Source: Perna viridis (Eukaryota). From it: DNA of 64,000 bases. The notes beneath the pieces were generated by a model that saw only the letters and a program-made list of their open reading frames with translations, did no database searches and was not told the origin of the DNA. Where the stretch lies: positions 51,714,862 to 51,778,861 of the forward strand of contig CM074511.1 in NCBI GenBank assembly GCA_037379345.1, read 5' to 3'. Both the position numbers and the translations under genes were made by a program. Shown piece after piece: positions 551 to 15,500 of the stretch. Numbering within the stretch: position 1 is the first letter of the stretch; every line of letters starts with the position of its first letter.

Positions 551-3500
551 CTGCAAAAACACAATAAACAATCAAATAACTCTAAAAAAATATACTGATG
601 TATCTAATAAAAAATAAAAGTAAATTCTAAACAAAATCAAAGGAGAAAATATAATTTCTACTACAAGTACTTCTGTGGCTACTAATTAAGCATTGTATTT
701 TCTACTCTTTAACCCGATTCATTTTGTACCCCCCTAAAAAGTGAAACTAAGATCAATGTCTAAAAGCTGAAGCATCAGGGTGGAAATGAAGCATTGTTTG
801 GCACTGAATTTGGTAGGAACCAAGCTTTAGGACTATGAAGTGGGATTGAGAAAAAGTTTATCTCCAGTGTTAGCAATCAATACACAAAATATCAAAGATA
901 TCATGTCACTCGATTAAAACAATATCTCACCCTTTAATATTGCTGAAAATATTCAAGTTCATTCAATAATTTGAAAAATAACAAGAAATTAATTGCAAAT
1001 CAAGATTTATCACATGGCTTGTAAACTTTAGATTTTTTCTTTGTGTAGATAGAAACAAAACTCAACGTAAATTAAGAAAAAAAAATGTAACAATTTTAAC
1101 ATTTGATTTTAAGCCTAGAAAGTAATTTTGATTTGAAATTTGATCCTTTCGATAAAAAATATGTTTCTGGTGATGAAAAAATAATTGTAGCATTGTAGTG
1201 ATAGTTTGATTGACCCTCACTGACAGCAGATTTGGTGGTAGACAAATAGAAAATTATAAGTTCAGTGACTGATGACATTGGTGAGTTACATGATGTCTGT
1301 AATACTTACTTGGTGGCCATACAGAAAATGTCTTTCATCATATACAATACATGTACACTCTTAGCCATATCTTCGACTGCCCATGGAGAAAACTCATAAC
1401 TAAAATAACAACTGATTCTTAATGAACAATACCATACAGAAACAATTTTAATAATTGGGACTGCCATGTATTTGTCCAAAGTCATTTATGAATTATCCCC
1501 CTTGTACAATGACACCAGTTGTGTTCTTCAGTACAACAATTCCTTAGTTCCTGGGATTTAGACTATTTTTGCTCAATAACACAGAAAGATAAGAAAGATT
1601 GCATAATAATATTTTTTAGGAAAAAACAGTTCTTAGATAAACTGACTTGGCAACACCCTGTTTTTATTTGTAAACTGACTTGACAATTCTAGGTATATCA
1701 GTATAAGCTGACTTGACTACAATGTTCTGTCTTAACTGGGTTGACAACCCAAGTATATCAGTATAATACTCATTATTCAACAATTTCCCAGTGTTTCAGT
1801 ATACACTTACTTGACAATACCCGGTATTTTTTCAGGAAGTGGATTGGATTTGATCATTTTATATTCATCATCAGTACATTGGGCATGGTATGACAGAACT
1901 TCTAATGCTACTTTATATTTCTGTTCCGATCTCCTGATTTTGTCATACAGCTGAAAATACATGGTGGTATGAATGAATAGACAGATGTCAAATCAAAGAA
2001 TGAAAATACTTTAAAATTTGAAATACTGTAACCATACCTTTATTTGTGGGTACCAATTTTCATGGTTTCTGAAAAAAAATTATCAGTCCACATATTCTTG
2101 AAATGGTGGATTTGACAACTGTACCATACAAATGAATGGAAAATTTCCCTTTCATTGGGAACCAAATTACGTGGTCTACCAAGCCCACCAATACCACAAA
2201 AATTTGTACCCATGAACAATAATACTTTCATAGTACCTGGTTCATCATAAATACAGCATAACAAGTTTTGACAGAATTTATCACAGTGTGCCAGATAGGG
2301 CAAAATATGAAGTTTTGTCTTATAGTACAAAGCAGGTGATATTATGTTTATTGGCGATATAACGATTGATTTGATATAACGATGACATTTGAAATTACCA
2401 AAGTTTTTCAATATCAGTCATTAAGAACAACTGATAAGTTGCAAATAAATTTAATATGTTTTACTTTAGTACTTGCTTACCTTGGCATGATGAAGTGCCA
2501 GTCCACAATAAATTGCAAATGTTTCAAATGACTCTTCATCAGCCAATGTGAATGTTCCCTCTTTCTTGTTTACCATCTGTACTACACCTATTATACTGTA
2601 ATATCAACAAAAACTATTATTGAAATCTGAGTTACACGGTTCCACAATTCAGGAAAGCTCTACAAATCATTATTAAGGTAGATCATACCGCATATTTCTA
2701 ATCTATAAGTTTTCTTATTTTTCTGGAGGATGACCTTGAATGAACGTACTTCAGGATTTGGATGTAAAAACAGAGGTCATCGAGCTTGATTTTGAGATAA
2801 TTGAGCCTTAAAAAGATAATTTGATCTGAATTCTAAGCAGAATTTCACTATTTTGCAAACTATCAAGAAATAGTAGATAAAATTTCTTCCCAATTTACAT
2901 AAAGAACATTTAATTGACATTCTTTCATATTTCAAAATTAATTTTGGGTTCACTGAACTCTTTCTGTACTATTAAAAAAAACAATATTCCCATTACATTT
3001 CTATAGAACATTTTCCCTCCAATTATCTCCCCTTAAAACAGGCCTTATACAAGTAATGATAGTAATTTTACCATAAATTTTTTTAGTTCAAACATTTAAA
3101 AAAAAAAAATTTAAACATAATATTTTTAAGCCATTTAAAACATTTTTAGTTCATTGAAAATATACATGTCTGTATAATTTTGTAAGATGACAGAGAAGAA
3201 TGCTCAATGTAATAGGTATGATCTACATTAAAGGGGTAGTGTACATTTTTTTATCAATAATGTATCTACCTAATTTAACTTAATGTTCTAGTTGTAGAAT
3301 ATAAATACTTGTACATAAATAATGATGAAAATACCATATTCTTTCACAATACAACTTTTTCATGATCAAAATGCTCAAATACAACATATCTTTATTTGTT
3401 TAACAGTTCTTTTTAAATTTTATGTTATCACAGACTAAGACTTTTGTTCAATTGTTTTTAAAAAAATTTCATAGACGTAAAATTGCCCTAACAGACATTT

Positions 3501-6500
3501 TTTATGATTAATGCTATTTCAGCATCTACATGGTTCCATTCTACAAAAAATACAATTTCATGGTTTGATCAACACACAGAAACAACCTCACATTTTCATC
3601 TTTAATCTACATACCTTCCCCTGATATATATTGGCATACACAATATTGACTTTGTTCTGTACCCTGTTTGCATATCAACTTCTCTGAAAACAAAAACAAC
3701 AGAAAAATAAGTGTAAGAAAATGTACACATTTATATAATGCTTGAAATTGTTGGCTAAAATTCAAACTCTTTTGTACTTCAATTTGCTAAAATATATTGT
3801 AAGCAACCCAAAACAACCTTTTCATTAAAAACAGTGTATTTATAAGTCATTCAACAGATTGAATTTCCTGCACAATATTCAAATATCTTAAGTTTGCATA
3901 ATAAAATCATCTCCATATACGGTAGAACTCAATGTAATGTCAAATGACATGAAAAAAAGAGAACAAATAAAGATTAGCCCCATTCAATAACATATCACCA
4001 TCTGAATCTACAATATCTGCATTCCTCCTAAAACAGAGTCATTCAACCACTAGACCTCCTATTGCAATAGATACTAATAATATTTACAACCCTTCCAAAG
4101 TACTGTTACTTACCTATTAAACCTCCCATCTCCATAGGCATCCATAATATTTAGCACCTGCCCTGTGGAAGCAACATGTCCAGCAACACCTTTGTCCATT
4201 GGAAATCTGAAATTCATAAAAAAAAATACATATATCAAGTCATCCATTATACACAGCTAGAAAAGTTTTAAAAACTTGAAAAGATAAAATATAACAACCA
4301 AAGTTTTTGCAAGAAAAATAAGAGTATTTAGAAACTTACAATGTATGATAAGGGCTGCATATAAGAAACAATATACATAGCAACATTATGAATAAAACAC
4401 CTTATATAATTACCTAATTTCCTTTTGTGGTACATGCTCTTTACCCGTATCAAATATCCGAGCATATAATTCACTAGTCTTAGTATCTACTAGAAACAAA
4501 GATGCTCTGTCAGCATTGACCAATTTCTTGGCATAGTTCTGTAAACATATCATAAATTAATGGTACATTCAAAAGCAAAAAATTCCATGTTCATTTGTAC
4601 TGGTATTCCATAGTTAGGGGTATGATATTTGCCGATTCACGTACATTTTACTTGCAACCTCTAGTTTTGAGTGATATTTATGCGGCTTGTCCTTTGTATG
4701 TATAAGTTCCTTTGTAATGTTTTGTCTTTTGGTGTTCCTCTCTACTGTAAATGTACTAATTTTTGCGGTGTACCAATTTCTGCCATTTTCAGAAAGAAAA
4801 GCATGAAAAATGGTACCTGCAAAATTGATTTGTATTTAGCAACTGTGAAATATAATATTATTTCAATATTTGATGTTTTTGGTTGTATTTTATCTGAAGG
4901 TTTCACTTTTGTCTATATAATTGGTTGTATTTTATCTGAAGGTTTCACTTTTGTCTATATAATTGGTTGTGTTTTATCTGAAGGTTTCACTTTTGTCTAT
5001 ATAATTGGTTGTGTTTTATCTGAAGGTTTCACTTTTGTCTATATAATTGGTTGTGTTTTATCTGAAGGTTTCACTTTTGTCTATATAATTGGTTGTGTTT
5101 TATCTGAAGGTTTCACTTTCGTCTATATAATTGGTTGTGTTTTATCTGAAGGTTTCACTTTTGTCTATATAATTGGTTGTGTTTTGTCTTAAGGTTTGTC
5201 TGTTGTCTATTTGATGTTGTCCAAGTGTTTTTCTGTTGTTCATGTGATGTTTCTGGTTGTATTTTGTTTAAATGTTTGTTGTTTCTTTGATGTTGTCCAA
5301 ATGTTTTTCTGTTGTCCATGTGATGTTTCTGGTTGTATTTTGTTTAAATGTTTGTTGTTTCTTTGATGTCGTCCAAATGTTTTTCTGTTGTCCATGTTAT
5401 GTTTCTGGTTGTATTTTGTTTAAATGTTTGTTGTTTATTTGATGTTTTGGATGTATTTTGTCTAGCAATTTGTCTGTTGTCTATTTGACATTTTTGGTTG
5501 TTTTTCTAATGATTTGTCTGTTGTCAGTTTGATGTTCCTAATTTCTTTCTCTTCTAGAATTTACTCTCATCTGACACTAGTATTTCTACTTCCTTCTTGT
5601 ACTTTCTATTTGCATGAATTAATAAACATATGCAATTTCTTGTATTAAAAATAATCTTGATTCAGTCACTGTGAAAAAGAAGTGCTTTCTTTTACCTTAA
5701 TTTTATTCATTTTTTTAAATAAAAAAAAATATTTAAGGTATTCTTGTTTTTTTAAATCTCTTTGTATAACCATCTCATCATTTAGAAATATACACTCCTG
5801 GCATTAGGAAACATTATCATTTTGTAATTGTAAATTATGTTATGGCTAGCACACAAAAATACATGCATATACACAGATAAAAATATTTTATGTAACAATT
5901 ATCTGATTTTCATCCATATTATTACAGTACATAACATGTACTCGAGTGCTCAATTTCTGCTTTCTAGTGTACCTACCATTATTTTCATGATAACAGTGTC
6001 CATACTAACAATGTCTTGAAATATCGACCTGAAATATCATTAACATCATTTAATTCTATACAGGACTCATTTTATGAGTCTCTGAAGCTATTTCTAAACT
6101 TCAAAGTAAACACAGATAACCCTTACTTTGTATTAATCCAATCATCAATGTAATTTTTTGCAGTTTATTTCTATAGAAATCCTCAACATGCCATATTTTA
6201 ATGTAAGATCTCTGCATCACAGTTTGATTAATGCCTCTATAGAATGCAAGCAGAAAATAAAATAGAAATTGAAATTGAGATTTTCTGTTTAATGGTTTAA
6301 ACAAGCTTAAGATAGAATTGTGTAATACCCATTAATCAGTTTGTTACCTACATAAAACATGGCAACTTTAAACAACTTGGGACTTACTTTGTGACAGCCA
6401 ACAAAAAGTCATTTAACTTCCTCTGTCGCATCATACTGTTATACATCTATAAAAAAATAACACTCATCATCATATGCTATAACCTCTCTCATGTTTAGAA

Positions 6501-9500
6501 ATGAAATCCTATTTTTTTTTAAACTGTATTTTGCATATTGTTGTGAAATATCAATTCACAACAGAACAAATGGTCAGAGTAAGAATGTCTGGTGGTTAAT
6601 ATTTTATCAATTCTATTTATGAGAGAAGTTATGTGAAATTCTGATATAATGCATTAAAAATATGATCATTTTGACTGTATATGAACAAGAATATAACACA
6701 CAGTGTCACATAAAAAATTAAAATTAAACTTAAAAGAAATATTCTTATTTAAAATAAACGTATTTTCTCTCCATATTTTAATACAAATATAGTAATACAC
6801 TTTAATACAAAATGAAGGGAATTTTTTTTATCAGAAGAAAACCACTATAACCGAGATCTTCACGAATTACAGCAAAATTCAACAATGAGCTGTGCCTAAT
6901 AATGATTCAGTGTGATTTCTTTATTTAAAAGCTCGTTATGGTTTGACAAAAATAATTCTCCTGAAATGTGGCAAGGTATTGCTCAGAGATACAGTTACAC
7001 GATACAGAATTAGTGGCAGCAACTGTGTCACTCACAATCTCTGTTTGAATCTATATAGACAACAACCCATTTATTATTGCACTCAAGAAATGACAATAAA
7101 CAGGGTAGGATCATGCAGTGACAACATGACACACTACCTCTATGAAATAGGCAGCAAAGCTTCCCCAGAAAATCAGGTTAGCTGCAATCTAAAGCAAAAT
7201 ACTCATGTTAGTCAAAATAAAACCATAAAGGTGTTAGTTTAACTTAAAGCACTACAAATCAGAACCCAACAAGTAGATACTTGCCAATCTACACTACACA
7301 ATGATTATGTAACTGTTCTAATCACTCATTTATACAAAGAGGTATGGATAAAAAGCTGGAGGAGAAACATTGGTTCAAACAACTGGTGTCAATTTCATAA
7401 AAAGTCGTAAGTGGAAAATTGATCTTAAGTTATGATGTAACAATGTTATTTTCTTTTATGATGTCATTACTACGATCAACTTTACACTTATGACTTTTTG
7501 TGAAATTGATGCCTGAATTGTAAATTTCCTACATGTAAAATGGAAATAAAGGGAAACCTGTCAAAACCAAACCCTAAATAAACCAAAAATCTGTCGAACC
7601 TAGCTCACTTTTATATCCTTTGTGGCAGTTTAAAAGTGGTCTGAATATGAATTAACCAAACACTTGTTCAAGGAGGTAGACCTAGGATAAGGGACATAAC
7701 TCTTGAAATCAGTGATATGTTTGTATCATATTCAATTTCACCAAAGCCTATCAAGTTTTCATTTGAAACAGAATAAAATCAGTCCAAGTTACTTTGATGC
7801 TTACATGAGATTGATGTCAAATGCTGAATACAAATATTCCAATGTTTTGTAAGAGTTGTGTCCCTTACCCTAGGTCTACCTCTTACACAAAACCAATGTA
7901 CAGTTCAAAAGAGATTTGGTTCGGATAGGTTTCACTGAAGTTGTTATCTTTCAGTTTCAGTTTCTTACTTGAAACCTTATATACTTCTATTTCTGATCTG
8001 GTACATGTTTTTCCAATAGCTTTATATTGTAGTAGGAGTTTGCTGCTGTCAATACCATAAATCTGCCATTATCAAATGTCGTCATGATGTTTTAATATCT
8101 GCAGAATGTTATATTGTATAAAATTAATTTCTTGGTTCTAAGCAGATTATGGTATTAAGCACAAACTCTTACAGGTTTAGCACACAGGAGTCATTTCCCA
8201 ATCATATATTGATATGACCCTTCCAGTAATATAATTCTTACAGGTGTAAATTTATTATTTGTTTCCTGTTAATCCTAATAGTGATATAGCATTCCTGATG
8301 AATGTATCAATTTTCACTTATCTTTGCTGTTTTCAATTTCATTTGGTAAGAAACAATAATAGGGAAAATGTAGTACTGGTCAGTCACTTCTTCCAATAAT
8401 TCTCTCATGCAGTGAAACTGGTCTAAACCAAACCCCAAAAAAATCTGAAAACCTGTCTAAACCAGTTTAAAATTATTCTGAACATTCCTTAACTTAAAAC
8501 CTGCCTTAACCAGACCAATTTTTAAGTCAAAAAGTGGTGTGGTATAGACAGGTTTGCAGTGTATCAGGTCTGGTTTCCATTTCATAAGATGTGAAGGAAA
8601 TGCCAATTACACAACAATCTCCAAGATGCTTATGAATATACAATACAAAGCCTTAACCATCAACACTGAGTCGGAATGAACCAAAAAAAAAATCGAACAT
8701 TCACGCAGAGTAACTATTATCCAATGATAGACACCATTGCCATAATTTGATAAGTACCAAAACCATGTAAAATTCAGACACTGACAATGACAGAGGTCAT
8801 AACAGGTGCAGAAAAATACTGGTACATTGTACCAACAATGTTTTGTTCACTCTACATACTACCGGTTCTTACAAAACTATTGCCCTTTCTGCATATACCG
8901 GTAGGTATATATTTTTGAGAAAATCGTACATTCATCAACAATATCAAGAAAGGTAACTCTTGCAAAGTGCCACTAATTAGATTTTGTCTCAGAAATACAA
9001 CAACTGATTGACAAACTTAGACTGGTAGTGAAGTCTGTTTGCGAATTAGAAATAAAGGTAAATTTTGTGTGTGGGTGTTTGACATGATTGATTCACCCAC
9101 TTCCTAATTTTTATGAAGGCTGCTAACTAAAATATACAAATGAAAGATAGAACAACTGAATTTGGAAAATGTAAATTCAAGATACATCCTACATCATTTA
9201 AATGGGAGATAACTCCTGTATCAGTGAGAATGGATTATATATATCAATAGCTGGCATAAACTGTACATCAATGTTTACCTGAACATACTCCACACAAACA
9301 TCAGCCCATACTAACAATGTAGCAGTCACCTAGAACACACAACAATAAAACATGCACACAACATTTGTCATACAAGTATAAAAAAAACAGGGACTTCATG
9401 AATACCATCTTTATCAATTATCATAAACTTTCTTAAGTATTATGTCATTATGTTTAAAATTGGTATTTATTACACACAACCATTAATTCTACTCAATATA

Positions 9501-12500
9501 AAGAAATACAAAATACAACATGTAAAATACAGGGAAGAAAGATCACAACACAGAAACATTGGAACAACAACAGAAGTACTTAGAGTTTTAAGTAAAAAAT
9601 ACAATTATTTCCATGATAATGCATCAATATGTCAAACAGGCTATCAACATAAAAATGATAAGTAAAATTTGATTTTATTAAAAAAAAAAGTTGTATATCA
9701 ATTTGAACTATTATATTTGCTCATTGCATTTAGCCAATTACTTTTGTCAACAATTTTATTAACATGTTATACAGGTAACATTTTGTTGGTTTTCACAATT
9801 TAATAAAGTCACCAATAACATGTCATGTGCTGTCATGACCCCACTGATAGAGGAAGTTGATATCCAATAACTTAAATGTATGTCTGGTCTATATAGTCAC
9901 TTACCAAATATGAAATTGATCCATTCATTGGGAATTGAGATAATTTTGGTGAAATTAGAGCAGACAGAATAACCAAAAGATGGACTGATGAACAGAGACA
10001 CAGACAAACTGATATCAAAACGCATTGGGTGGGGGGTATAATCTAGTTGGTTCTTATTTCAGGCACTAGCTGCAAGGAGAGCTAAGTTTCTTATACAATT
10101 TGAAGACCTTCCAAATAAAATTTAGTATAACTATCTGAAATGGACACATCAGAAAATTCCACAAAAAATTGATTTTTTTTAATTGACTTCTGTCCTACCT
10201 CTTCATCTTCCTGAGTAAAAGGTTCAGCACTGAACTGTCTGTACAACTCTACCACACCTATAATAACAAAGTCAAGGTCATAGGTAATAACAGTGCACTC
10301 TGATATACAGACAAGGCTTAGAACTGTGGGAAAATATGAGTCTGTGCCGAGCATCTTCAATGATCGAGCCAAATGCATATATCAAAGTTTTGGTTAATGT
10401 GTTCACATTTTTAATGGAGATCCCCAATTTACAATCTAGCAGTATTCTTTAAATAAATATACAAGTAAAGGCACTTTAAGTTAATCATTAGGCAATAGCC
10501 TATTGTTATAAATCACTAAATCCATGAGATAATTTAAATTTCAACTTTCTAATACAGAAATTTTCAGTATTTCTTTATATAAGTATAGTTATTTCTTCTT
10601 TAAAATGTTATGTCATTTGTAAAACTTCACTATAGATTATGTCACTATTTCAGAGGATGTGACAGACAGAAAGACAAATATAGAGGATGAAATCCTTTGT
10701 GCAGGCATATAGCTAAGATTTTTAAGGAAGTACATTAGGAATGCTTTTCCAGTGAAGCTTAGACCCTCAATATAATTCAGAACAAAGGATAAGTAGCAAA
10801 CCACCATTTCCTTGTGTTTGATATCTTTATCAACTTCATAAACAGGGTACATACCAAGAACCCCTGAGTCTTCCTGTAAAATAGGAACAGCTAACACAGT
10901 CTGGACATGGTCCATCTTAATACCCAAACCTGCTGGGAACCTCATGTCCTAAAACACACAAAGTTCAATGACATTTGAGATAGAAAGAAACATAATGAAA
11001 GTATTCTCACTTTCTTGGGTCTATTTGCTTACTGGTTTCATCTGGTGTATATGGTTTAAACCTATTTTGATTATTTAGAATTCAAATTTACTCTTCAGAA
11101 TTCCATGTACTAGTAGTTTTAGAGATGTCATTGATCAAATAATTGAAAAAGTAGAAAACCAATACAAACATGAGAGTATTTAAGTGGTTCTGTCAAAATA
11201 TTGTATTAAAAGACCCAAAGACCAATGTCCTTTCCATTTCATTTGACTTCAAGGGCCAAAATATTTCATTGAATTGTGTTTTGTAACATTTCACAAACAT
11301 TTTATCCATGTAAGCGTCTTCCATGGAAACGAAGTCTTATCCTTAAATTGCACTCAGTTTTATTATTATGAGGGAAAATACTTTTAGCTCTAAAATACAG
11401 TTCATTTCAATAAATTTCAAATCTGTTTCTGTTACAGATAAATGATACTTCTATCCATTGCTGATGATTCATCAGATGAAAACATAATTGTTATATGGAC
11501 TTTAACTTTTCCCCTTATAATGATTTGACTTCAAAGGATTTTAAGTAGTCCTACAAATTCAAATGCCAGTTAAGATGAAATAAAACACAAATGGAGTTGT
11601 CTGAAATGTATAATTCTGAGACATTATTGGATATTTTTTGTAGTTTGATATGTCTTCATCATAAATGCTAAATTGTTCTTATATTTTGTTTTCATACAAT
11701 TCTATACAAAGTTAAATTGGTATTTTTAAGTTGTTTAAAGCAAATTTAGGTGCATACCAGGTAGTTACTACAAGTATTACTATGTAAAAGAAGATAAGTT
11801 TGTTAAAATAAAAATGAAATTCTGTTCAGCAGTTTCAGTGGATTTGTGATGACAAAAAAGAGGGCTGAAGGACTGACACTTCAATAACATTAAACCCTCT
11901 GTAAATTTATAATAAAAATTGTGATATTTTGTTCCTACTGGAAATTTACACTCAATGAATAAACTGTAAATTATTGTATAAGACGGGTGTAAAATAAACT
12001 ACAACTTTAACTTAAACAAAACCAAGTAATTGAAATTGGACAGGAAGTAATAAAGAAACCAAGAACACTTTACAGTTACCATGTGATATGCATCACATTT
12101 TTAAACAATGTCATATTTTTGTCAATATGAGCAGAAAACTTCATGTGACTTACCCCTTGCACATGATTGGTTCTAATTGTATCTTTCGTCTTGGCAACAT
12201 AAGAGGGCAGAGAAGTTCCTGTTTCTATGTTACCAATGTAGGAACCAGTAGATGATTTGTGTTTATCATGTGACCTCGAACCCCTGAAACACAAACAGAT
12301 GAAAGTAATATGACAATTCTAAACCAATAAAAATAAAGTATTATTAGAGGACACTACACCTTGATTTATTTAGCATTTGAAGAATTCAGTTTTCCCCAAA
12401 TCAACAGTTTATCATCCAGCCCCTACTGATTGTTCTGTTCACGCAATACTGGCCATGATCACCCTGACCACATAACACTATATATAGCCCTAACTGACTG

Positions 12501-15500
12501 TCCTGTCTACACAACACTAGTCCTGACTGTCCTGCCTACACAACACTAGTCCTGACTGTCCTGCCTACACAACACAAGCCCTAACTGACTGTCCTGTCTA
12601 AACAACACAAGCCCTAACTGACTGTCCTGTCTACACAACACAAGCCCTAACTGACTGTCCTGTCTACACAACACTAGTCCTGACTGTCCTGCCTACACAA
12701 CACAAGCCCTAACTGACTGTCCTGTCTACACAACACAAGCCCTAACTGACTGTCCTGTCTACACAACACAAGCCCTAACTGACTGTCCTATCTACACAAC
12801 ACAAGCCCTAACTGACTGTCCTGTCTACACAACACAAGCCCTAACTGACTGTCCTATCTACACAACACAAGCCCTAACTGACTGTCCTGTCTACACAACA
12901 CTAGTCCTGACTGTCCTGCTACACAACACAAGCCTTAACTGACTGTCCTGTCTACACAACACAAGCCCTAACTGGCTGTCCTTCCTACACAACACTAGTC
13001 CTGACTGTCATGCCCACACAACACAAGCCCTAACTGACTGTCCTGTCTACACAACACTAGTCCTGACTGTCCTGTCTACACAACACAAGCCCTAACTGGC
13101 TGTCCTGCCCAAATAAAACTAGCCCTAACTGGCTGTCCTGCCCACACAACACAAGCCACAACTGGCTGCCCTGCCTACACAACACAAGCCCTAACTGGCT
13201 GTCCTTCCTACACAACACTAGCCCTCACTGGCTGTCCTGCCCACACAACACAAGCCGTAACTTGCTGTCCTGCCTACACAACACTTTCATGTCCTATCAA
13301 CAGTATATGGCTCTATCTTGTTTCCTGCTGTTATTTGCAGCAAACAATGAAAGTGTTCTTCGAACATGCAATTTAACTTCCACAAAGATATTCTAGCATT
13401 AAACCTAATGTCAAAAATATATAAATAGGAGATGTGGTATGTCATCCTTCAGAAGCCAAGCAACGAACAATTATACTTCTACAGGGCACCACATGGTTTT
13501 CAATGATGGGCAAAGCCATACCATAAAGCAAGCTGTGAAATTCCTCAAAATGAGTGAAGAAAATTATTCATAAAAAATGAAAATTAACCTAATCTACAGA
13601 AAAAACATAACATGAATAACAATAGACATTAAAAAAATGACAACCACTGGACTACAAGTTCCTGGGAAAAGTAGACAGCATAAAAAAATGTAAAAGTTCT
13701 ACTGTGGCAATATGATCATCATGATCTAAAAAAAAAAACTTAAAAAAAACAAAAAAGTAAGCCAAAGATATAATGAGTAATGGACAGCTAAAGAGAATAT
13801 CAACAGCTAAGGGCACAAATAGATAATCTCTATATTCTCCCTACTCACTGTATTAAATACAAGAGTATAAAAGGAAGTAACAATGAATCTGTCATTGTAA
13901 AGGACAAAGCAGTGCATGTTTATGTTAAAGGTTACCCTCTATAATTAACAACTTCTTCTGATTGTTAATATGGCAGGTGTTTTCTTCTGCTGTACCTCAG
14001 TGCAAAGTGGCAAAATTATCACATAGTTGTGAGAACAAACTGTGCTAATGTTTTTACATATTAGTCAGTCTGAAGAGGGAGAGATTCATTAATCAATAAA
14101 CAGCAGCAATTTATATCACCAATGCTGCATCATGTACCTCAATCAAAAAATTACATAATTTTTTTATGTAACAAAATATTTAAACATAGAAACATGTCCC
14201 CTGCTTTGGCAAAGATCAAGTGCAAAAATCCCATAACTTCTACACTACTTGTAGAATCAAAATGGCAGTGCAAATGATTAATTACATATGATGACTAAGA
14301 ATCCTACAAAATTTGAACAAAATCTGTCAAGTGCTTTCCAAGGAGTTGCATCTACAATGTACTACTCTAGTGTAACATGTATAAATTCAACAACAAAGTT
14401 CCATAACTCATGTTAAAATTTCTTTTATCAAAATGATATGGCAATATTATGACTTACAATCCTACAAAATTTGAACAAAATCTGTTGTGTCACCACAACA
14501 ATAACATACATAAATGTTTGTTATTCTACAGATTCAAGGAAATTGATATTATTTCATTCTACAGATTCAATGGAAATTGATATTACTATGACCCCTTTCA
14601 TTGTGCAGTGGAGGACAACTAAAAAAGGAGATATTCATAAACAAATATACATGCATATTAATATCTATTCCAAGCACCACTTGCATTTCAATTACTGAAT
14701 AAATATGACATGACCACTTCAGTCTGCATCAACTTATTTGCTTCTACCATTCAGTAAATGTAAACATCTTTAAGCCTTTTTTGAGATACTGCTGCAATCC
14801 AAAAGAATCTACCAAAAGTTAACATAAATCTGTACAATATTAACCTCTTTGTCATTTCCTTATTAATGTTGTATTTATTTAAGAACTTTTTTCAGGATTC
14901 TTTGAACAAAGGTCTTACAGACTAATGTTGGGACAGGAAAGTTGAGCTTCTGTATATGATTTCACAAAAAGTGTACAATGTGTTGTAGGATATGCCATCA
15001 CAATGCTTTTTTCAATTTCTGTTATGATGTCATTACTAACAATTAATATTACACCTTTTTTTGTGAATCTAGAATTACTGTAAACAAAGCTCACAAAAAG
15101 AAACTCTGTGATAACATAAATGCACACATACCCAGTGTACCCAGTGTAAAATAGGCACTGAAGCTTTCTTTGAAGATTGGGTAAAATCATGTAAGAACTT
15201 GGTACACATAGACACCACTGAACTTATAAAAATGTATGTTATTCTACAGATTCAAGAAAACAAGGGGACATCAATGCATGGCTTGATATTTTTTACTGTT
15301 TAATATCAATTTCTCACCTGCTGGATGATATTGAAGAAACTTTGTGATGATACAACTGAAATGATAGGAAATAAATACTTAATTAAATTTCAGGTATGTA
15401 ATGAACCCCTCAAATATAGTAAAAACTTATCATTACGTTTCAAAGTACATGTAGTAAACACATATAGCTTTGATAAAAAAGATCCTAGGTAACAGGTGAT

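Follow-up and report, generated by a model that had tools for sequence, protein, structure and literature searches.

The window (the whole 64-kb stretch of Perna viridis DNA analyzed here, to which all coordinates refer unless another locus is named) carries on its minus strand a PDE10-type tandem-GAF phosphodiesterase gene with two neighboring 51-nt exons, A and B. Taken together, the evidence makes it moderately probable that the pair arose as an ancient tandem duplication of one 51-nt exon, that A is the default form, and that B is of the ancestral type, is regulated by an Rbfox-type factor, and mostly replaces A where it is used.

Gene Identity

A search with the GAF-B exon (4538..4416, 41 codons) found a 923-residue protein of Ostrea edulis as the closest full-length relative. 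RefSeq names this protein "probable 3',5'-cyclic phosphodiesterase pde-5," after the C. elegans gene; the names PDE10 and PDE10A are used for its relatives in Mytilus coruscus and amphioxus. The orthologs carry two GAF domains (PF01590/PF13185) and a PDEase_I domain (PF00233). The solved structure that best matches the oyster catalytic domain is PDE10A (304 bits, vs. 241 for PDE5), and the exons in the window show few or no differences from Mytilus proteins called PDE10 or pde-5 by their sources. We therefore assign the gene, on sequence grounds, to the PDE10-type tandem-GAF phosphodiesterases. The first-pass annotation had called it a PDE10A-type gene, and both the domains of the orthologs and the best catalytic-domain match agree with that call.

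The gene shares with vertebrate and other deuterostome PDE10A the domain order of GAF-A, linker helix, GAF-B, and catalytic domain. The lophotrochozoan genes differ in having a second, derived copy of the segment (A), which is now the major form, whereas the amphioxus, acorn-worm, and sea-star orthologs have one B-like segment in all isoform models. The known variants of vertebrate PDE10A differ at the N terminus. Isoform X12 of Ostrea edulis (P0154) is without a 52-residue catalytic stretch, and that region is thus alternatively spliced in relatives too.

The Exon Pair

The exons and motifs discussed below are as follows.

10199..10257, minus strand: upstream constitutive exon, region of the last GAF-A strand; acidic run at its end; 3' end in phase 0
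9351..9356, minus strand: UGCAUG, 26 nt upstream of the exon A 3' splice site; putative Rbfox repressor position
9329..9279, minus strand: exon A, 51 nt, 17 codons, derived "W-A-D" type; default form in the species
7188..7138, minus strand: exon B, 51 nt, 17 codons, ancestral-like "W-G" type; alternative exon
7112..7117, minus strand: UGCAUG, 22 nt downstream of the exon B 5' splice site; putative Rbfox enhancer position
6389..6446, minus strand: downstream constitutive exon, continuing the inter-GAF helix; start in phase 0
5975..6028, minus strand: next constitutive exon, linker helix/start of GAF-B

Exons A and B are both open in frame, with AG before them, GT after them, and Trp as codon 8. 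The earlier description of two 51-nt, phase 0-0 exons with canonical splice sites and Trp at codon 8 between 10199 and 6446 was thus confirmed from the sequence. It had also been claimed that neither exon appears among the listed open reading frames. This holds for exon B, which sits in a 25-codon open frame below the listing length, and fails for exon A, which lies inside a listed ORF (9198..9329). The intron between A and B is 2090 nt long in the window and 565-5069 nt in other species. Exon B has kept its frame, its length, both splice sites, a consensus-like branch point (CTAAC), and the GCAUG that follows it. Since the flanking exons are in phase 0 and A and B are 51 nt each, the reading frame is kept with A alone, B alone, both, or neither.

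In the window, A and B are identical at 3/17 residues. Across the whole 64 kb, B is nevertheless the best match to A among 120 candidates with an open frame of 51 nt between AG and GT (BLOSUM62 score 28; the next candidate scores 9), and a score of at least 28 against A was reached by three of 40,666 stop-free 17-codon windows. A profile built from the A- and B-type peptides of relatives matched exons A and B alone between 6300 and 10400, and there is therefore no third copy in that interval. The similarity of the two exons is far beyond chance, and they are homologous duplicates. As tandem duplicates should be, they are homologous neighbors in one interval, equal in length and phase, with canonical splice sites.

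Transcript Evidence in Perna viridis

In seventeen public runs, between 6% and 12% of the words sampled from 2400-11000 are present, about the share that exons alone would give. Four RNA-like runs from four studies (X1, X3, X4, and X6) were compared with 5700-10950. The runs consist of assembled contigs rather than raw reads, from unstated tissues, and minor variants drop out of such contigs. Single contigs in runs X1, X3, and X6 join 10853|10255-10197|9327-9279|6446-6386|6026, and in run X4 the upstream exon is joined to A in a low-depth contig. The junctions 10853|10255 and 10197|9327 are present in all four runs, as is the joint 6026|6386. Because contigs of three of the four runs splice the upstream exon, A, and the downstream exon together, A is the main, default form in this species. 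The two predicted junctions of exon A, 10199>9329 and 9279>6446, were thus both recovered within single contigs of X1, X3, and X6; no contig covers exon B in any of the four runs.

In the assembled contigs the bin containing exon B (7108-7283) has a depth of zero in 4/4 runs, and the junction from A to B (9279>7188) is likewise absent. Contigs lose minor variants, so zero depth is not proof that B is silent. In run X4 a downstream contig with a depth of 32.8 ends two bases beyond 6446, and the contig with the upstream exon and A has a depth of 5.4. The end of the downstream contig is the point at which A, B, and the upstream exon all finish in AG, and the low depth of the A-bearing contig hints at a branch, perhaps another upstream path that was left unassembled; neither a joint to B nor a skip joint is listed for this run.

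Conservation and Origin of the Pair

Approximately 170 isoform models (RefSeq, plus GenBank records) were sorted by their content from the acidic tail of the upstream exon to the beginning of the downstream one. The models are predictions, and they fall into the following groups.

Separate A-only and B-only models, bivalves: Ostrea edulis, Magallana gigas, Crassostrea virginica, Saccostrea cucullata, Pecten maximus, Argopecten irradians
Separate A-only and B-only models, gastropods: Babylonia areolata, Pomacea canaliculata
Separate A-only and B-only models, nemerteans: Lineus longissimus, Tubulanus polymorphus
Models with A then B: Mytilus edulis, M. trossulus, Saccostrea echinata, Dreissena polymorpha, Patella, Tubulanus
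Skipped models, with neither exon: Ostrea, Magallana, Mytilus
A annotated alone: Pinctada, Mactra, Ruditapes, Littorina

In 4/4 loci of the species in the last group, an unannotated 51-nt exon of B type, with an intact frame and AG/GT sites, lies between A and the downstream exon.

Pinctada imbricata, locus L002, 8530-8580: unannotated B-type exon
Mactra antiquata, locus L003, 24229-24279: unannotated B-type exon
Ruditapes philippinarum, locus L005, 9094-9144: unannotated B-type exon
Littorina saxatilis, locus L004, 13512-13562: unannotated B-type exon

Orthologous B exons were found in 15 other species. The order A then B, at the same intron position, is shared by oysters, scallops, pearl oyster, clams, Dreissena, limpets, caenogastropods, and nemerteans, and the length of 51 nt, the phase 0-0, and the AG/GT sites recur for both exons in five other genomes. 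The A peptide of the window is identical to the Mytilus A segment, the B peptide equals that of Mytilus edulis at 15/17 residues, and the flanking exons differ slightly from every Mytilus entry. Among 16 species, the mean number of identical residues out of 17 is 9.6 between A exons of different species, 6.5 between B exons of different species, and 4.3 between A and B within a species. Differences at codon positions 1, 2, and 3 run at 0.48, 0.31, and 0.63 in B and at 0.33, 0.17, and 0.58 in A. In both exons position 2 varies least and position 3 most, a pattern of coding constraint. Arthropods, cnidarians, a bryozoan, echinoderms, hemichordates, and amphioxus have a single B-like "W-G-G" segment.

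These comparisons indicate that the duplication is older than the split between bivalves and gastropods, and it is probably older than that between molluscs and nemerteans. Both copies have been kept as coding sequence and maintained by selection. As B resembles the single segment of other animals, B is the ancestral type and A the derived copy, which became the major form in bivalves. The search for both peptides in other lophotrochozoans, proposed with the first-pass annotation, thus found the pair kept across molluscs and nemerteans.

Other variants occur at or next to the same slot. A third alternative, of 23 residues, is present in Tubulanus (P0374), and the annelid Owenia (P0418) has two B-like copies in tandem. 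Optional micro-exons follow the segment in Lineus (6 residues; P0205) and Ptychodera (10 residues; P0423-P0431).

Position in the Protein and Effect of the Swap

AlphaFold2 models of the unaltered Ostrea edulis isoforms X1 (A) and X2 (B), each from an alignment of 40 sequences, both have one continuous helix from residue 289 to approximately 335, after the last GAF-A strand (272-281). The alternative segment corresponds to residues 294-310 of the models, with a pLDDT of 69-85, and makes up the first third of the helix from GAF-A to GAF-B. Residue 383 of PDE2A aligns with oyster residue 312, and the alternative segment sits just before it. This places the segment where GAF-A ends and LH1 begins, LH1 being the name of the linker helix between GAF-A and GAF-B in structures of PDE2, PDE5, and PDE6 (PMC13199883). 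Both the models and the PDE2A alignment bear out the earlier placement of the segment at the end of GAF-A, running into the long inter-GAF helix. In a literature search, no paper on natural isoforms that exchange the LH1 helix turned up for PDE2, PDE5, PDE6, PDE10, or PDE11.

The two forms differ most at positions 9, 10, 12, and 14 of the segment. At positions 9-10, 12, and 14, A has Ala-Asp, Cys, and Glu, respectively; in B the same places hold Gly with a small residue, Ala, and an aromatic side chain. By helical periodicity these positions share one face. The swap would change that face from acidic residues plus Cys in A to small plus aromatic residues in B. It could plausibly alter the packing of the helix, a dimer contact, or the coupling of the GAF domains to the catalytic domain.

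Mutual Exclusion and Alternative Explanations

At least eight species have separate predicted isoforms with A only and with B only, as expected under mutual exclusion. We consider mutual exclusion well supported by the models in oysters, scallops, caenogastropods, and nemerteans, and a hypothesis for Perna viridis. In the closest relatives, Mytilus edulis and M. trossulus, none of the 24 models compared is B-only; B always occurs together with A (Mytilus edulis X2, X9, and X21; M. trossulus X9), and the Mytilus models also include A-only and skipped forms. The features of the locus do not enforce exclusion: the exons are multiples of three, the A-B intron has 2090 nt, and all sites are GT-AG. 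With lengths divisible by three and an intron of 2.1 kb, nothing structural prevents leaky forms with A and B together or with both skipped. An inverted-repeat search of 6380-10260 for competing RNA pairing returned a transposon-like hairpin and weak AT-rich pairs, with no convincing docking/selector pair. Trans-acting factors might nonetheless regulate the choice.

The first-pass annotation had called the exons probably mutually exclusive. The A-only and B-only models of many relatives agree with this, while the A+B and skipped models of the nearest relatives do not, and the four runs here show the A form only. Its further remark, that the arrangement had not been described for PDE10, stands as regards the literature, in which no paper was found (a search for PDE10 or other GAF phosphodiesterases with mutually exclusive exons returned nothing relevant). 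It does not extend to the databases, where RefSeq isoform models of other molluscs carry both forms.

In mytilids, B might instead be a cassette exon that is added after A, the regulated product containing both and having a helix 17 residues longer. This reading fits the four Mytilus models with A then B and the lack of a B-only model among the 24 Mytilus sequences. Co-inclusion of two 51-nt exons stays in frame, and outside Mytilus there are A+B models for Saccostrea echinata, Dreissena, Patella, and Tubulanus. However, eight or more other species have B-only models, an insertion of 17 residues would put a continuous helix out of register, and no 9279>7188 junction is present in the four Perna viridis runs. 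The A+B models may moreover be artifacts of model building, since most Saccostrea echinata models are A+B, whereas in S. cucullata, of the same genus, the A-only and B-only forms are cleanly separate. We regard a cassette exon as unlikely.

That exon B is a silent relic in this mussel, its sequence kept by recent descent and its splicing into mRNA lost, we consider very improbable. Such a loss would fit the zero depth over B in four runs from four studies, but contigs of this kind are unable to show absence, and the frame, length, splice sites, CTAAC branch point, and downstream GCAUG would all have had to survive intact. The exon has been retained across the divergence of bivalves, gastropods, and nemerteans, and 2/17 residues differ from the B of Mytilus edulis. 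There is next to no chance that B is an accidental open frame flanked by accidental splice-like dinucleotides. The low identity of A and B (3/17) is the one point in favor of an accident; B ranks first among the 120 candidates by a wide margin, and the orthologous B exons at the same place in 15 other species refute it. The reading that we prefer thus remains a duplicated exon pair with A as the default and B as a regulated alternative.

Rbfox Motif and Proposed Regulation

A GCATG motif lies 7-22 nt downstream of exon B in 4/4 bivalve loci (the window, Pinctada, Mactra, and Ruditapes). From locus-wide motif densities, the joint chance of this placement is ~4e-7, or ~1e-5 with the two venerid clams taken as one. 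The intron sequence around the motif has no evident similarity between the bivalve loci. A (U)GCAUG near exon B, as expected of an Rbfox-regulated exon, is thus conserved in bivalves, and both gastropod loci (Littorina and Patella) lack GCATG downstream of B. Conservation of UGCAUG upstream of A is weak, with the motif found only in the window (-26) and in Patella (-39) among six loci. A search of the genome for the Fox-1 C-terminal domain gave no match, and neither did the controls.

Rbfox usually promotes the inclusion of an exon from a downstream site and represses it from an upstream one. The conserved GCAUG after exon B suggests that inclusion of B is activated by Rbfox. In C. elegans, RBFOX acting on UGCAUG controls the mutually exclusive exons of egl-15 (5A/5B) and unc-32 (7a/7b) (PMC3585155). 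The mussel pair resembles these in consisting of adjacent homologous exons of equal length and phase, with a (U)GCAUG at a conserved position in a flanking intron, and a tissue-specific choice would be expected for it as well. It differs from them in that double inclusion and skipping are in frame in the mussel gene and occur in some public models, and the role of Rbfox here is a predicted one.

We propose the following mechanism. The exon encoding the first 17 residues of the helix after the last GAF-A strand (LH1) would have been duplicated in tandem, leaving A as the default and B as a regulated alternative with the ancestral sequence type. Most likely an Rbfox-type factor, acting on the conserved (U)GCAUG just downstream, switches B on; in cells that express Rbfox, B would be activated and, in this mussel, A perhaps repressed. 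B would then be confined to certain cell types, for example in nerve or muscle, and where chosen it would mostly substitute for A. Use of B may thus be tissue specific. Restriction of B to Rbfox-expressing cells would explain its absence from bulk-tissue contigs.

Repeats Around the Locus

The A-B intron contains a short repeat at 7636-7987 with 32-nt terminal inverted arms (7673-7704 and 7851-7882, 94% complementary). Its summed contig depth is 50,000-70,000 in 4/4 runs, and it is probably a very abundant element of the MITE or SINE type that is transcribed in many places. Two adjoining tandem arrays occupy 4879-5446, in the intron downstream of the 5975-6028 exon, one with 7.9 copies of a 42-nt unit at 97% identity and the other with 3.5 copies of a 76-nt unit. 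At 12000-14000, within an upstream intron, the GC content rises to 0.40 (vs. ~0.31), with strong negative GC skew and short minus-strand ORFs that repeat one motif. This block looks like a satellite or tandem repeat.

Significance

It is possible, and we suggest it tentatively, that a switch of the GAF-A/LH1 helix of PDE10 pre-dates the split between molluscs and nemerteans (possibly also annelids), has persisted for more than 500 million years, and in nerve or muscle is controlled by Rbfox. The pair adds to the known alternative exons a deeply conserved and probably Rbfox-linked one from outside the usual model organisms, and exon B is missing from several mollusc annotations. The route from the GAF ligand to the catalytic site in PDE2, 5, 6, 10, and 11 is still debated, with the linker helices as the presumed conduit. 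Here, two versions of the first 17 residues of such a helix have been kept side by side over a large part of the animal tree. If the proposed switch is real, it would yield two forms of the enzyme with different allosteric coupling or dimer pairing, a natural experiment on signaling from the GAF domains to the catalytic domain. The natural A and B isoforms would allow the role of the helix in dimer stability, cyclic-nucleotide binding, and activation to be tested directly.
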